From: Octopus sinensis
Taxonomy: Eukaryota
Length of the DNA: 64,000 bases
Direction of reading: 5' to 3'
Assembly: GCF_006345805.1 (NCBI RefSeq)
Contig: NC_043017.1
Coordinates: 31,682,001 to 31,746,000, forward strand
Shown here: in pieces, positions 15,818 to 64,000 of the stretch
Numbering within the stretch: position 1 is the stretch's first letter
Layout of the letters: every line of letters begins with the position of its first letter
Translations under genes and position numbers: made by a program
The notes under the pieces: model-generated
The model's input: the letters and a program-made list of their open reading frames with translations, nothing else
What the model was told of the DNA's origin: nothing
Databases searched by the model: none

Positions 15818-16400
15818 CAACATCATCATCATCGTTTTTCCATGCTGGTATGGGTTGGACGGTATGGTGGAAATGTTAGTGTGTCGGGCGAAGTGCTTAA
15901 CGGTATTTCGTCTGTCTTTACGTTCTGAGTTCAAATTCCGCCGAGGTCGACTTTGCCTTTCATCCTTTCGGGGTCGATAAATTAAGTACCAGTTACGCAC
16001 TGGGGTCGATGTAATCGACTTAATCCGTTTGTCTGTCCATGTTTGTCCCCTTTGTGTTTAGCCCCTTGTGGGTAGTAAAAAAATAAGTATTTCGTCTGCC
16101 GCTACGTTTTGAGTTCAAATTCCGCCAAGGTTGACTTTGCCTTTCATCCTTTGGGGTCGATTAAATAAGTACCAGCTATGCACTGAGGTCGATATGATCG
16201 ACTAAAGCCATTTGTCTGTCCTTGTATGTCCCCTCTATGTTTAGCCCCTTGTGGGTAGTAAAGAAATAGGTATGACAGAAGCTGGCAAGCCAGAAGTCTG
16301 CGTCAGACCCTAGTATCTGTTTTGGTCCAATTTCTACAGCTGGAAGCCCTTCCTCATGCTAAGCTCTTTGCAGAGTGTACTCAGTGTCTTTTAGGCGGCA
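15818..16400 (-). mobile_element. SINE-like family C ((GAT)n tail), split by a family B dimer
   Basis: CATCATCATCGTTTTCCATGCTGGTATGGGTTGGAC, resuming after 16268 with GGTATGACAGAAGCTGGC. Confidence 0.8.
15867..16268 (+). mobile_element. SINE family B, head remnant + 2 tandem bodies, TSD GGTATG
   Basis: Two bodies joined at AAATA/AGTATTTCG; GGTATG at 15861-15866 and 16269-16274. Confidence 0.9.
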
Positions 16401-16451
16401 CTACACACGCACACACACACACACACATTTGATAGGCTTCTTTCAGTTTCT

Positions 16452-16553
16452 TATTTCTTATTTCTCTACTGCCCACAAGGGGCTACACAAAGAGGGGTCA
16501 AACGAGGACAGACAAACTGATGAAGCCTATTATATCAACCCTAATGCATAACT
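16452..16553 (-). mobile_element. 5'-truncated family B fragment inside a decayed family A copy, 17-bp TSD
   Basis: GGCTTCTTTCAGTTTCT at 16435-16451 and 16554-16570. Confidence 0.8.
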
Positions 16554-17764
16554 GGCTTCTTTCAGTTTCTGCCAACCAAATTCATTCCCAACAGTCTGGG
16601 GGCTTTCGCAGTAAAAACTTATGCAAAGGGTCACACACAGAGGCTGAACCTAAGACCACATGGTTGGGAAATATGCTTTTCAACCACACAGCTATACATC
16701 AATACTATAGGTATTTTCCTTCTTTTTCTGACTAAACTACACAAAATGTGCCTAAGACTACAGCAACTAATGTGTCCTTCCTTTTTCAATGCAATATGGT
16801 GTTATTTGAATGATTTGACTACAATTTCTAGCTCTTTCAATGGCAGTGAAGAAACTTACTCAATGGCTTGATTTTCTGCAACTCATTTCTTCAATAAACA
16901 CTTATTACAATCTTCATCTCGCTCGAGGCCTTCCTACCTCCTCCTATTTCTCTTTCATCTCCTTCTCAGCTAATTATATTCATTTCTCTCTCTTTTCAAG
17001 CACCCCCTCCCCCGCTCTCCTGCTGTTACTTCTCTTCCTTTTCCAGTGCGTCGGTTAAGTTTTAGAATCGCCGGAGTCAGTACAAACCAGAACTAATGTA
17101 CTGTATATATATTGTATCTTGTGATAGAATAAGAGCCTTGAGTTTGAACCAGCACCCCATGTCAGAATTAGATTTGAATTAAATAATACAGAATAATGTA
17201 TTAGTTGTTATACATATTGTAGGTTGTTCATTAGCTACAGCTGTATGACTAATTATTATTATTCAAATATTTCTTTCTTACATGGTTACTTATAAATATA
17301 GATTTGAATATAGATTTGAAGCAATGCAAAGACTTGGTCTACATCAGTAGACTGGTAGAATAGACTGGAAAAAAAAACCAAAAAGTGTTGTTGTACTTGC
17401 TATTCATAATGGTGACAACTAAAAATATGGTCTTGGGAACACAATAGAATTTTTTTTTATATTCTTTCTAATTCTAATAACAATGGCACCAAATGGAAAG
17501 AAAGAGTCTGAAGGTGTTTTGAATATTGTTTTGTTGGTAACAGAACAGAATGTCCTTGAGTGAAAGAAAGAAATCTTGTCACATTTTGCTCATATAAACG
17601 TCCAAATCCTTTATAATACTTTGCCTAAATACGATAGAGAAGACAAAACAATAAAAAAGAATATCCAATTATAAACTGAAATATATTTTGAATATCTAGA
17701 ACAAAAAATTTCAGCAAAATCACACATACCAAGATATAGGTCACGGTAATGGTGGTATTTATAG

Positions 17765-17788
17765 CCCCTTGTAGGCAATAAAGAAATA
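17765..17788 (+). mobile_element. 24-bp family B 3'-end micro-insertion, TSD GGTATTTATAG
   Basis: CCCCTTGTAGGCAATAAAGAAATA flanked by GGTATTTATAG at 17754-17764 and 17789-17799. Confidence 0.85.
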
Positions 17789-17860
17789 GGTATTTATAGA
17801 GTCTCATTCCCTATGGTATATACACTTATTCATTGTTTTTCCCCCAATTTGGATTTCTGA

Positions 17861-18338
17861 GTTGTTGTTGTTGTAGTTAAGCAACAAGATTGGTAAGGGT
17901 GATTAGGTGATGGTCTAGGGCTTAGGGGCGGGAGACCTCAGACCTTGGAAAAAAACAAACTTTGGTCGTCTTGTTATAGTCGAGGGCTCTTCGTTGACGC
18001 CCGACACCACTGGGAGGTGGCCCTCGAAGTCACTGGAAATGGAGATCTCCAGGTCCAAATTCTTGGATGGCTGCTGTTGGTGTTGTTGTTGCTGCTGCTG
18101 TTGTTGTTGTTGTTGTTATGCAACAAGACAGGTAAGGGTGATTAGGTGATGATCTAGGGCTTAGGGGGGGGAGAACCCAGACCATGCAAAAAAAAAATGG
18201 TCGTCTTGTAGTAGTCAAGGGCTCTTTGTTGATGCCCGACACCACTGGGAGGTAGCCCACGAAGTCACTCGAAATGGAGATCTCCAGGTCCAAATTCTTG
18301 AACGGCGGATTTCTGGGTTGTGTCCCTTGCTTTTCTTG
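17861..18338 (-). repeat. Two tandem ~239-bp copies of a retroelement-like 3' end with (CAA)n tail
   Basis: GGTAAGGGTGATTAGGTGATG at 17892 and 18131; each copy is preceded by (GTT)n. Confidence 0.75.
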
Positions 18339-60915: not shown

Positions 60916-61279
60916 TATACATACACAAGATGGGCATAATGCATCATGGATCACATTATCCAAGAGGCATAGTGTATCTAGGACTACATTATCCAATGAA
61001 CATAACCATTTATAGAAAGAACTACTAGAACATGATTCTTGAAATGCTGGTGATGTTTAACACCAGGTCATACCTGGCCAAGCAGACATGATCAAAGACA
61101 TGCCAGCTACGATCAAACTGTTTTTTTGTTTATCTGCAAATACAATTGCCTGTGTCCTTTTTTTAGATATGTTTTGACTTGAGGGAAATTTAGCTGATAT
61201 TTCTAGCAAGCCAAATGACCATGTAGAGGTTCCTTTAAAAAAATGTAGTTAGTAATGGCAGAGAATATAATGATATTAA

Positions 61280-61490
61280 TTAAAGGCAGGGAGCAGGGAG
61301 ACTAGTTAGCATTCCAGGTTAATTACGTAGCAGCATTTCATCCGTCTTTACTTTCTAGTTTCAAATTCCACTGGGGTCGATTTTGCCTTTCATCCTTCCA
61401 GGGTCAATAAAATAAATACCAGTTGATCACAGGGGTTGATTTAATCGATTTAGTCCCTACCCCCAAGTTGCCGGCCTCATGCCAAAATTT
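61280..61490 (+). mobile_element. Family B alternative-tail variant, decayed
   Basis: TTTCAAATTCCACTGGGGTCGATTTTGCCTTTCATCC..GCCGGCCTCATGCCAAAATTT. Confidence 0.7.
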
Positions 61491-61620
61491 GGAATGAGAA
61501 CCCAGGTTTGAAATTTCCCCAAGACACCTGAAGACGGCTGAGGGTAAATCAGCCGAAATGTTGTGTTAACAACAAACAAGATGAGGACAAATATCGGTCG
61601 AATGTAAATAAAGTAAATAA
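61491..61620 (+). mobile_element. Family F tail with a core-intact minimal hammerhead (61523-61567)
   Basis: GACAC-CTGAAGA-C-GGCTGA-gggtaaa-TCAGCC-GAAA-T-GTT-GTGTT. Confidence 0.7.
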
Positions 61621-63236
61621 TGATGATGATGTCAACATTGTTGATGATGATGAATGTGATGATGATGATGATGATGATGATGATGCTATTGATGATGATG
61701 TGGATGATGATGATGATGATGATGTGGATGATGATGATGATGATGATGATGATGATGCTGTGTGATGATGATGTTGATGATGATGAGAGATGATGATGAT
61801 GATGATGATGGTGATGCTGTTGATGATGATGTTGATGATGATGATGATGATGATGATGATGATGATGATGGTGATGATGATGATGATGATGATGATGCTG
61901 TTGATGATGCTGTTGATGATGATGTTGATGATGATGATGATGATGATGATGATGATGATGATGGTGATGATGATGATGATGCTGTTGATGATGATGTTGA
62001 TGATGATGATGATGATGATGATGATGATGGTGATGATGATGATGATGATGATGATGATGATGAGATGATGATGATGATGATTGATGATGATGATGATGAT
62101 GATGATGATGATGATGGTGATGATGATGATGATGATGACGGTGATGATGATGTTGATGATGATGGTGATGATGATGATGATGATGATAGATGATGATGAT
62201 GATGATGATGATGAGATGATGATGATGATGATGATGATGATGGATGATGGTGATGATGATGATGATGATGCCGATGACGATGATTATGATGATGATGATG
62301 ATGATGATGTTGATGATGATGTTGATGAGATGATGATGATGTTGATGATGATGGTGATGGTGATGATGATGATGATGATGATGATAATGCCGATGATGAT
62401 GATGCCGATGACGATGATATGATGATGATGATGATGATGATGTTGATGATGATGTTGATGATGATGATGATGATGATGATGATGATGATGACGGTGATGA
62501 TGATGATGATGATGGTGATGGTGATGATGATGATGATGATAATGCCGATGATGATGATGCCGATGACGATGATTATGATGATGATGATGATGATGATGAT
62601 GATGATGCTGTTGATGATGATGTTGATGATGATGATGATGATGATGATGATGATGATGATGATGATGATGATGATGATGCTGTTGATGATGATGTTGATG
62701 ATGATGATGATGATGATGATGATGATGATGATGATGGTGATGGTGATGGTGATGATGATGATGATGATGATGATGGTGATGATGATGATGATGATGATGA
62801 TGATGATGATGATGATGGTGATGATAATGCCGATGATGATGATGGTGATGATAATGCCGATGATGATGATGATGATGATGATGGTGATGATGATGATGAT
62901 GATGATGGTGATGATAATGCCGATGATGATGATGCCGATGACGATGATTATGATGATGATGATGATGATGATGATGATGATGATGATGATGATGGTGATG
63001 ATAATGCCGATGATGATGATGACGATGACGATGATGATGATGATGATGATGATGATGATGAGATGATGATGATGATGATGGTGATGATGTGGATGATGAT
63101 GATGATGATGCTGTTGATGATATCAAAGGTAATGGTTATGATGATGATGGCAATGACATTGATGATGATGATGATGACGACAACAACTGCAATGATGATG
63201 ATAACTGTGACAGTAATATGATGATGATAATGATGA
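61619..63236. repeat. ~1.6-kb interrupted (GAT)n array
   Basis: Read directly; source of the poly-M/H/D ORFs. Confidence 0.95.
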
Positions 63237-63486
63237 TGTTGGTATTATCATTAACAGCCTCTTTAAAATTTCTTCCATGATGGATTGGTTTAATGTTAAG
63301 CTAATTTCCTATGGAAACAAGAGAGAAACGGTAAATTTGTTCTGAAGATAACATAGAGAGCAAATAAAATAATGCATGATGCATGTACCAAGAATGGCTA
63401 CCGAATGGCTTAATGGAATGATAGGAAATGTACAGAACAAGGTGTAAGAGCAGTATAACATGGTATATGAAGAACGTGGTATATGA

Positions 63487-64000
63487 AGGCGGCAAGCTGG
63501 CAGAACCGATAGCACACCAGGTGAAATACTTAGCAGTATTTTGTCTGGCGCTACGTTCTGAGTTCAAATTCCGCCAAAGTCGACTTTGCCTTTCATCCTT
63601 TCGGGGTCGATAAATTAAGTACCAGTTATGCACTGGGATCGATATAATCGACTTGATCCGTTTGTCTGTCCTTGTTTGTCTCCTCTGTGTTTAGCCCCTT
63701 GTGGATAGTAAAGAAATAGGTATTTCGTCTGTCGTTACGTTCTGAGTTCAAATTCCACCAAGGTTGACTTCACCTTTTATCCTTTCGGGGTCGATAAATT
63801 AAGTACCAGTTACACACTGGGGTCGATATAATCGACTTAATCCATTTGTCTGTCCTTGTCTGTCCCCTCTATGTTTAGCCCATTGTAGGTAGTAAAGCAA
63901 TAGGTATTTCCTCTGCAGTTACGTTGAGTTCAAATTCCGCCGAGGTTGACTTTACCTTTCATCCTTTCGGGGTCGATAATTTAAGTACCAGTTATGCACT
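63487..64000 (+). mobile_element. SINE family B, head + 2 full bodies + partial third (runs off the window)
   Basis: Junctions AAATAGGTATTTC at ~63715 and ~63898; GGTATATGAA lies immediately 5' of the head. Confidence 0.92.

Follow-up and report, generated by a model that had tools for sequence, protein, structure and literature searches.

In the blood clam Scapharca broughtonii, short interspersed elements (SINEs) form tandem arrays of the type TSD1-(SINE)n-TSD1, where TSD stands for target site duplication; unequal recombination between TSDs was invoked by the authors only for the other array type (PMC11481361). In squamates, SINE-derived satellites (sSat) have been described whose origin was called 'nonrandom' and in which homogeneity is greater in long arrays (Vassetzky et al. 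2023, PMC10702118). Reports of such satellites in squamates and molluscs leave the first duplication unexplained or ascribe it to generic unequal recombination, and satellite DNA biology still lacks an answer as to how a dispersed element takes this first step towards an array. Here, we describe a SINE family, family B, in a stretch of 64,000 nucleotides of Octopus sinensis (contig NC_043017.1, positions 31,682,001 to 31,746,000; hereafter, the window), where monomers, dimers, multimers of at least three units and an 11-kb satellite are all found within 64 kb.

The central observation is that two features of family B coincide. Its insertions are biased to targets beginning with GGTA(T), and the single GGTAT inside the element is the point at which tandem units are joined, always in one register; one dimer of this kind is enclosed by a single TSD, and the same unit makes up the satellite. 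We tentatively favour a scenario in which the element integrates at GGTA(T), its own internal GGTAT serves as a target, the resulting multimers are retrotransposed, and arrays grow into satellites. The reverse order, with multimers first and the bias second, is nearly as likely. Our sample is this one window, with seven family-B insertions flanked on both sides and five multimer loci.

Family B and its copies

Family B was defined by a blast search of one copy against the window and an alignment of the copies. Its consensus of 233 nt consists of a head of about 49 nt (AAGGCGGCGAGCTGGCAGAAACGTTAGCACGCCGGGCGAAATGCTTAGC) and a body of 184 nt (consensus positions 50-233, from GGTATTTCG to CCCCTTGTGGGTAGTAAAGAAATA); the 3' module is specific to B and terminates in GTAGTAAAGAAATA. 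GGTAT occurs exactly once in the consensus, at position 50, and there is no run of four T (T4). The tail motif was counted 61 times in the window against an expectation of 0, and every unit keeps the full tail, either as GTAGTAAAGAAATA or as a variant differing by 1-3 nt. Just downstream of the head lies a B-box-like GAGTTCAAATTCC, read by eye. A tRNA origin of the head was looked for: ARAGORN found no tRNA, and an Rfam E-value scan returned microsatellite-like microRNA noise only, with no tRNA among the matches listed. The minimum-energy fold predicted for the head region is a long hairpin, not a cloverleaf. In this fold, CGAAAUGCU would pair with GGUAUUUCG around a UAGC loop to give a 9-bp hairpin (consensus 49-57, e.g., window 35077-35098), so that the tandem junction would fall exactly at the loop/stem boundary. 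At internal junctions, pairing of the tail GAAAU with AUUUC in the unit that follows is modelled at -1.4 kcal/mol. The tail GAAAUA is complementary to UAUUUC at the body start; each body unit thus has complementary ends, and the tandem junctions are near-palindromic (GAAATAGGTATTTC).

Twelve B loci are present in the window: one satellite, four dispersed multimers, four near-full-length monomers (starting at 29467, 35037, 37444 and 53616) and three fragments (starting at 16452, 17765 and 58813). The dispersed multimers are a dimer at 15867-16268; a headless copy at 18337-18772 (plus strand), composed of a partial unit and two body units, with the tail cut after GTAGTAA and no recognisable TSD; a copy at 44877-45265 (plus strand) with a head of the GAACCG type, one body and a partial body, which has lost its 3' end and with it a readable TSD; and a copy running from 63486 to beyond 64000 (plus strand), with a head of the GAACCG type and at least three body units, which continues past the right end of the window. 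The fragment at 58813-58972 (minus strand) has a head and breaks off on its 3' side where the B-specific module begins.

Family B looks like a SINE in several respects. It is short, non-coding and dispersed, with common 5' and 3' ends at the 12 loci in 64 kb. Its TSDs vary between 6 and 18 bp at seven loci, five of which have uninterrupted homologous sites, and 5'-truncated copies retain the 3' end (17765-17788, 16452-16555, 53616-53839 and the head of the 15867 copy). No long interspersed element (LINE) with the B tail was found in the window. The only LINE piece there, at 35358-35910, is the C-terminal part of an RTE-type reverse transcriptase (open reading frame of 180 aa) with a very short 3' end in (ATG)n, and its DNA is 88% identical to a 576-bp ENA metagenome contig. 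We considered it as the partner LINE and rejected it, since it ends in (ATG)n and not in the B tail. The best explanation that we can offer, tentative as a whole, is that family B is a LINE-dependent SINE of the octopod genome.

A sister family, A, shares the head and about two-thirds of the body with B and differs in the 3' module; both families presumably have a core of the Deu/Nin type. Copies of family A lie at 24963-25485 and 61335-61456 of the window and at 4220, 12924, 58542, 66042 and 69443 of L001, a gene locus of O. bimaculoides that served as comparison DNA (76 kb, of which 14 kb are gaps). Family A carries the same internal GCGGTATTTCG with another tail and forms no such multimers in the window, a point that we count in favour of our scenario.

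Target sites

The TSDs reported by the initial annotation turned out to be exact in sequence and position: GGTATG (15861/16269) around the dimer, GGTATTTATAG (17754/17789) around the 24-nt 3'-end fragment 17765-17788 (plus strand, 17754-17799 with both flanking copies), AGGTATATTTACC(C)AAAA (29449/29700) around the monomer 29467-29699 (plus strand, 29449-29717), GGACACGTGTA (35026/35268) around the monomer 35037-35267 (plus strand, 35026-35278) and GTACTGG (53609/53841) around the monomer 53616-53839 (plus strand, 53608-53847), which is 5'-truncated by about 9 nt. The same holds for two targets that are not of the GGTAT type, namely the tail-like AGAAACTGAAAGAAG(CC) at 16435-16451/16556-16570, flanking the 5'-truncated copy 16452-16555 (minus strand, 16435-16572), and CTGTTGTTGATGTTGTTG at 37426-37443/37680-37697, flanking the monomer 37444-37677 (minus strand, 37426-37697). 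For the 53616 copy, we corrected the TSD to GGTACTGG (8 bp), which is the reading of the right copy and of the closest paralogue (26343-26350); the left copy now reads AGTACTGG, and the base preceding it implies an ancestral CpG, so this copy must have been mutated later from G to A. An earlier idea that the extra G at 53840 was templated by an RNA reaching past AAAUA was withdrawn, as the paralogue shows the CpG mutation in the left TSD.

The genuineness of the targets was tested by joining the flanks and searching for uninterrupted homologues. Five insertions (the 29467, 15867, 53616, 35037 and 16452 copies) have such homologous sites, which means that their targets were pre-existing genomic sequence. 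The empty site of the monomer 29467-29699 was found in O. bimaculoides, at L001:53060-53170, where the sequence is continuous and reads AGATATATTTACCAAAAT. The 15867 and 53616 copies sit in two members of one host repeat, of which the window holds several uninterrupted paralogues; these read GGACGGTTCGACC where the dimer has its left GGTATG. The sequence GGGTTGGAC to the left of the 15867 head, at one point taken for diverged head sequence, belongs to this host repeat. A paralogous empty site of the 35037 monomer lies at 36160-36270, and the 16452 copy has several paralogues.

Read in the sense orientation, the seven TSDs start with GGTATG, GGTATTTATAG, (A)GGTATATTTACC.., GGTACTGG, GGACACGTGTA, CTGTTGTTG.. 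and AGAAACTG.., that is, three times with GGTAT, once with GGTAC and once with GGACA. In the non-B part of the window, GGTAT has a background frequency of 6.7e-4 per position. Against this background, three GGTAT starts among seven give p ~1e-8 (3e-7 if an offset of +-1 is allowed). For four GGTA starts, p is ~1.3e-9, and for five GG starts ~1.2e-6. The flanks of the GGTAT-type insertions are mutually unrelated, so these are independent sites. Two further copies can be read on the left side only, and in both GGTAT lies 11-12 nt upstream of the 5' junction. One is the satellite, whose putative left TSD GGTATACATAAG (11221-11232, minus strand) is placed directly upstream of the 5' edge of the array, with GGTAT 12 nt away (the chance of finding GGTAT within 5-20 nt is about 1%) and the right copy beyond the window. 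The other is the copy at about 63489, directly preceded by GGTATATGAAG, just as the initial annotation had it. A strong preference for targets beginning with GGTA(T), which that annotation had postulated and proposed to check by looking for enrichment of GGTAT over background, is therefore borne out within the window.

The GGTATATGAAG sequence is present twice to the left of the 63489 copy, at 63462-63472 and 63478-63488, as GGTATATGAAG-AACGT-GGTATATGAAG (63462-63488, plus strand), and the second copy abuts the head of the element. This arrangement resembles an empty TSD, as would result if a second nick had been made at that GGTAT site with the same 11-nt stagger and the attempt then aborted.

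Family A has a target bias of its own. In O. bimaculoides, its copies end in ..GTAGAAAAG and their TSDs start with ATATAC, AATATA, AATATTC and AATT. This bias of family A to AATAT-like targets parallels the GGTAT bias of family B, and a short motif at the TSD start is thus a general feature of these SINEs.

Tandem junctions and the satellite

A census of the window yielded 63 tandem junctions, and all of them are in the same register, with the tail AAATA followed by GGTATTTCG. According to the initial annotation, every junction reads AAATA/GGTATTTC. This is correct for the register and too strict for the letters: GGTATTTCG follows the tail exactly in 38 of the 63 junctions, and the other 25 are variants by 1-2 nt (AGTATTTCG in eight, and more). 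The single internal GGTAT at position 50 is thus the point where all tandem copies are joined, as had been proposed, and the scattering of junctions named beforehand as a sign to the contrary was not seen. None of the 63 junctions contains a TSD-like spacer.

The dimer (plus strand) illustrates this anatomy best. It begins with a 5'-truncated head (15867-15901, from consensus position 15), followed by body unit 1 (15902-16085; 95.7% identity to the dispersed-copy consensus) and body unit 2 (16086-16268; 90.7%), which are joined as AAATA/AGTATTTCG. A single TSD, GGTATG at 15861-15866 and again at 16269-16274, encloses the whole.

The satellite occupies positions 1-11124 (minus strand; TRF, blast and junction census) and runs past the left end of the window. 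It comprises 60.5 units of 184 bp, from GGTATTTCG to AAGAAATA, with 93% matches by TRF; the units are about 95% alike and there are no heads among them. Its first unit (11125-11220, minus strand) is 5'-truncated, with homology beginning at about position 93 of the body unit. A search for higher-order repeats in the array revealed no more than slightly raised identity at lags 5, 10 and 12. The view that multimers seed satellites is supported by this 11-kb array of the very unit found in the dispersed multimers. Of the 184 positions, 8 distinguish the satellite consensus from that of the dispersed copies, e.g., TTTCAAACCTTCGGAG versus TTTCATCCTTTCGGGG; the dispersed multimers carry the dispersed-type consensus and were therefore not derived from this particular array.

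About 58 of the 63 junctions lie in the satellite and must be counted as one event, which leaves five independent multimer loci. With founder inheritance possible, the fixed junction alone does not show that junctions form recurrently at this site, and the preferred junction-forming site of the initial annotation is not supported by it: a single founder dimer leaves the same picture, so that fixed as opposed to scattered junctions do not discriminate. The informative feature is the geometry. Each junction retains the complete tail and begins at the first base of the pentamer, which coincides base for base with the normal 3' junction between an element and its TSD at a GGTAT target.

One may ask whether the coincidence has any cause at all. 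The partner endonuclease might happen to prefer GGTA(T), while the junction of a founder dimer happened to fall at the sole GGTAT. The probability that a 233-nt element contains a given pentamer is about 15%, and a single founder could have given rise to all multimers. Nor is such a bias unusual in these SINEs, as family A in O. bimaculoides favours an AATAT-like pentamer right after its conserved end. Yet the junction sits at the first base of the pentamer with the tail complete; this is one position among about 233, so the relevant chance is about 0.4%, not 15%, and we consider a mere accident very improbable.

Origin of the multimers

We propose that family B integrates by target-primed reverse transcription, the first nick being made immediately 5' of GGTA(T) on the sense strand. 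In this process, the first bases of the TSD complement the 3' end of the primer; the primer would here be a DNA 3' end in ...ATACC, and the resulting TSD of 6-18 bp would begin with GGTAT. As the element carries the pentamer of its own target, once and at the head/body boundary (the loop/3'-arm boundary of the predicted head hairpin), a resident copy would be a target itself. A new cDNA primed at the internal GGTAT of a resident copy would share homology with that copy's head and with the beginning of the body, and the upstream DNA end could anneal to it in register and so resolve the 5' end. The net gain would be exactly one 184-bp body, in the order resident head, new body, resident body. 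By a second route, a cDNA that has copied GGUAU would end in ...ATACC and could restart on another tail, with the same product. The body lacks T4, so RNA polymerase III could read through several units; a head+(body)n element might then be transcribed as a whole and retrotransposed at full length or 5'-truncated. Further hits and unequal exchange would let arrays grow into satellites. That retrotransposition itself builds satellites in this way, with ...ATACC ends being accepted, each hit or restart at the internal GGTAT adding one body, and arrays attracting further hits, is a supposition that we make with some reserve.

Multimers account for five of the 12 B loci. Tandem SINEs have been reported at 2-3% in a clam and in potato; the far higher share in the window argues against rare DNA accidents and for a process tied to retrotransposition. 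The units within a multimer are 86-90% identical, which is no more than between loci, and each unit is 89-96% identical to the consensus. Divergence within loci thus equals that between loci, so the duplications are as old as the insertions and are not recent local events.

These data bear on a purely DNA-level origin, in which the body is duplicated when the internal GGTAT and the right TSD copy, as 5-7-bp repeats, undergo replication slippage or unequal exchange; unequal crossing-over then lengthens the arrays, and reverse transcription plays no part in the junction. Such an exchange is the usual explanation for tandem SINEs, would yield exactly the observed junction, and predicts GGTAT-type TSDs on multimers, which is true of the 15867 copy and of the left flanks of the 63489 copy and the satellite. 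However, repeats of only 5 bp separated by 184 bp offer a very poor substrate for a change seen at five of 12 loci, and the equal divergence within and between loci would require the duplication almost at once after insertion. Moreover, GGTAT is absent from the left flank of the 44877 multimer, and the first unit of the satellite, which starts at about position 93 and so lacks the internal site, is nevertheless followed by complete units. We therefore regard a DNA-level duplication as improbable.

The heads of the multimers are more diverged than those of the monomers (22 mismatches in 129 positions of three multimer heads versus 10 in 184 of four monomer heads; Fisher p=0.001; p=0.025 against an ancestral head consensus), while the bodies do not differ (6.6% versus 7.6%). 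Within the dimer, mismatches number 8 in the 5' body and 15 in the 3' body (p=0.14). Both differences run in the direction predicted if bodies were added later to older resident copies, and weakly favour priming at the internal site of a resident. The dimer head differs at nine of its 35 nt, all transitions (C>T five times, A>G three times, G>A once), next to bodies with 4-8%; this divergence might reflect a greater age or the decay of CpG sites, or else the template RNA may have been edited or deaminated in the hairpin region.

Several observations speak against the scenario that we favour. Its basis is narrow: seven (+2) insertions and five multimer loci from a single 64-kb window. One founder, propagated by retrotransposition or unequal exchange, would leave a fixed junction just as well: starting from a dimer, units can be gained or lost through homologous template switching or unequal exchange while the junction stays in place, and the other four loci could descend from a multimeric master. 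The head-age signal comes from three heads and is driven by the 15867 copy, whose head, 26% diverged, is far above the supposedly coeval 3' body (8%). Two of the multimer heads share GAACCG and CACACC and may descend from an older or separate master. No chimaera of the form A head + B body + A body was seen, though family A carries the same internal site. B-like copies from three other samples, described below, are without GGTAT, and the bias may postdate the multimers. Finally, the satellite begins with the truncated unit and passes from it directly into a precise junction. A truncated monomer has no internal site, so self-targeting cannot give this edge, and some multimers must have existed as cDNA. 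Most simply, the founder of the satellite was a 5'-truncated multimer cDNA, made by template jumping or copied from a multimeric RNA, which weakly favours multimeric cDNAs. As to the choice between self-targeting and template jumping, the hints in the window are weak and partly opposed, older multimer heads on one side and the 5'-truncated edge of the satellite on the other.

The same edge is among the points that recommend the reverse order of events. An accidental dimerisation would have created a master of one head and two bodies, whose RNA polymerase III transcripts bear GGUAUUUCG directly after every internal tail; the partner reverse transcriptase would begin at one of these tails, a nicked target would anneal to the downstream GGUAU, and the GGTAT bias would be a consequence. 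The junction would simply be inherited, with unit numbers changing by homologous template switching or unequal exchange. A comparable use of RNA is on record: Luan and Eickbush reportedly found in 1996 that the target of Bombyx R2 anneals to 28S sequence downstream of the 3' untranslated region. With multimers first, the coincidence of motif and junction needs no prior preference, and the identical register at all loci follows. The body without T4 would permit multi-unit read-through, the variants common to two multimer heads fit a shared master, and the founder of the satellite resembles a 5'-truncated multimer cDNA with a GGTAT-type flank. GGTAT-type flanks are found at all three readable multimer loci (15867, 63489 and the satellite) and exactly so at one of four full-length monomers.

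The samples outside the window point the same way. A B-like copy of O. bimaculoides (L001:40605-40894, TSD ATAAGGCCTA) has an A/T-rich, tail-like junction without GGTAT, and two short contigs, L012 and L011, contain one B-like copy each with A/T-rich, tail-like junctions, no clear TSD and no GGTAT. It seems, then, that the GGTAT bias is specific to the lineage that also has multimers. The single B-like copy of L001 is interrupted at 40780-40850 by a run of 10 N that has an identical stretch of 50 nt to its left and right, which looks more like an assembly artefact than an internal duplication.

On the other hand, the bias may have either of two sources, a cleavage preference of the partner endonuclease or pairing of the primer with GGUAU 3' of the RNA tail, and the former explains it as well as the latter. 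The initial annotation had the 3' end of the RNA, ..AAAUAGGUAU, pairing with the nicked target. This is unsupported, in that no insertion carries GGTAT-derived bases absent from its target. The 37444 monomer, with TT at its 5' junction, passes at its 3' end from AAATA plus one extra A straight into an unrelated TSD, and the 16452 copy has a duplicated tail (AGAAATAAGAAATA) and its tail-like TSD (AGAAAC..). Past the fifth base, the match of the TSDs to GGTATTTCG is no better than chance (T at position 6 in one of five), though a multimeric RNA would offer GGUAUUUCG. Monomers with the other head type (GAAACG) are likewise found at GGTAT and GGTAC targets. A search for subfamily structure among the body units (first versus later, monomer versus multimer) revealed only scattered variants without pattern, and the unit alignment contains no position-specific variants common to different loci. 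The greater divergence of multimer heads relative to bodies is also left unexplained. We thus consider it possible, if rather doubtful, that the multimers preceded the bias.

Overall, the best synthesis that we can draw from weak hints is that the retrotransposition machinery makes the junction at GGTAT, that multimers are retrotransposed in their turn, and that arrays expand by exchange.

Other repeats and comparison DNA

The window is repeat-rich eukaryotic DNA with a single assembly gap of 100 N at 14997-15096. Among its other repeats, one is about 400 bp long and present in at least 13 copies in both orientations (14183-14596, 19287-19581, 21444-21856, 23588-23966, 24180-24598, 25712-26144, 28920-29371, 33268-33748, 43477-43872, 43960-44350, 56789-57222, 59901-60321 and 60413-60782); its counterparts in O. 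bimaculoides (L001 24096-24540 and others) share about 85% identity with it. The B copy 16452 lies inside a member of this repeat (paralogues at 14223-14381, 21680-21817 and 29176-29329), and the host-repeat paralogues of the B copies 15867 and 53616 are directly beside copies of it (26.3-26.55 kb and others). A long trinucleotide microsatellite of the (ATG/CAT) type extends over 61700-63130, with poly-His, poly-Asp and poly-Met frames; the GC skew of the last 2 kb is 0.52. At 13233-13334, about 100 nt form a near-perfect inverted repeat that a plant microRNA hairpin model scores at 56 and 52 bits on the two strands, below the family threshold.

A translated repeat of the window has an 'uncharacterized protein' of Octopus bimaculoides as its only named database relative, and other window repeats are about 85% identical to copies in L001, which shows no synteny with the window. 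Protein searches with the translated satellite, a monomer (profile A1) and the RTE fragment led to L001, a few ~1-kb contigs from Logan and ENA, and an ENA contig that is not from octopus. When metagenome, prokaryote-genome and viral collections were scanned for exact patterns in search of more octopus DNA, only chance 20-mers or nothing came back, and an exact look-up of the window open reading frame spanning the 63489 head produced no match.

Comparison with known systems

In R2 with its 28S target and in SART1/TRAS1 with telomeric repeats, read-through RNA pairs with the target. Family B would be like them in that the bases just 3' of where reverse transcription starts match those with which the target begins, which makes for a precise 3' junction and restores the motif at every insertion. 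R2, SART1 and TRAS1 are autonomous LINEs with strict single targets, whereas family B is a SINE with a bias of 4-5 nt and a putative pairing. If a multimer RNA did impose the bias, this would be R2-like use of downstream RNA sequence by a SINE, of which we know of no case. Bibillo and Eickbush are also said to have shown, in 2002, that the R2 reverse transcriptase jumps end to end between templates, which for family B would give head-to-tail cDNA joins made by reverse transcriptase. The R2 jumps start from the 5' end of the RNA and not from an internal site, and to our knowledge no RNA of family B starting at position 50 has been found.

Among octopus SINEs, the tRNA-derived OK, OR1 and OR2 (Ohshima and Okada 1994, as cited in PMC4758252) resemble family B in host group and general class; the comparison is one of class, not of sequence. 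In the limpet Patella, the satellite PcH-sat resembles the B satellite in being a mollusc satellite built from part of a SINE, in its case the tRNA-related Nin-SINE (PMC11121367). Its unit lacks both promoter boxes, no head-bearing intermediates were described, and the mechanism was left open (PMC11121367).

The squamate sSat share with family B a tandem unit that is part of a SINE and, often, a longer terminal unit that reaches the SINE end (PMC10702118). In our case, the tandem unit is the SINE portion of consensus positions 50-233, and the terminal unit is extended to the SINE end in the dispersed multimers with heads (15867, 44877 and 63486); the satellite itself opens on a truncated unit and extends past the window at its other end. 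The squamate arrays involve other SINE families and hosts, and they were described without a junction motif, a TSD analysis or a mechanism based on retrotransposition (PMC10702118). No true dimeric SINEs were found in squamates (PMC10702118), whereas in family B dispersed head+(body)n copies coexist with the satellite. If the scenario outlined here is true, it would explain the 'nonrandom' birth of SINE-derived satellites by a mechanism that is general and can be predicted from sequence; should the link between target motif and junction be causal, the birth of a satellite could be predicted from the target motif of a family and its presence inside the element.

A further parallel is provided by the arrays of Scapharca. 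Like the dimer, they consist of a mollusc SINE (tRNA-related in the clam) with a full first head, headless inner units and one TSD (PMC11481361), and the dimer at 15861-16274 is itself an array of the TSD1-(SINE)n-TSD1 type. The first and inner units of Scapharca have truncated tails, while those of family B keep the full tail and are joined as tail|GGTAT; no junction motif or target bias was reported for the clam (PMC11481361). Our literature search returned no target motif at a SINE multimer junction and no octopus SINE satellite. The initial annotation had known of no description of such a structure; this no longer holds for the anatomy, published accounts of which exist from a bivalve (PMC11481361) and from squamates (PMC10702118), but the link to the motif does appear to be new. 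Thus, the anatomy of family B is that of known systems, and what seems to set it apart from them is the coincidence of target motif and multimer junction, together with the mechanism that it suggests.

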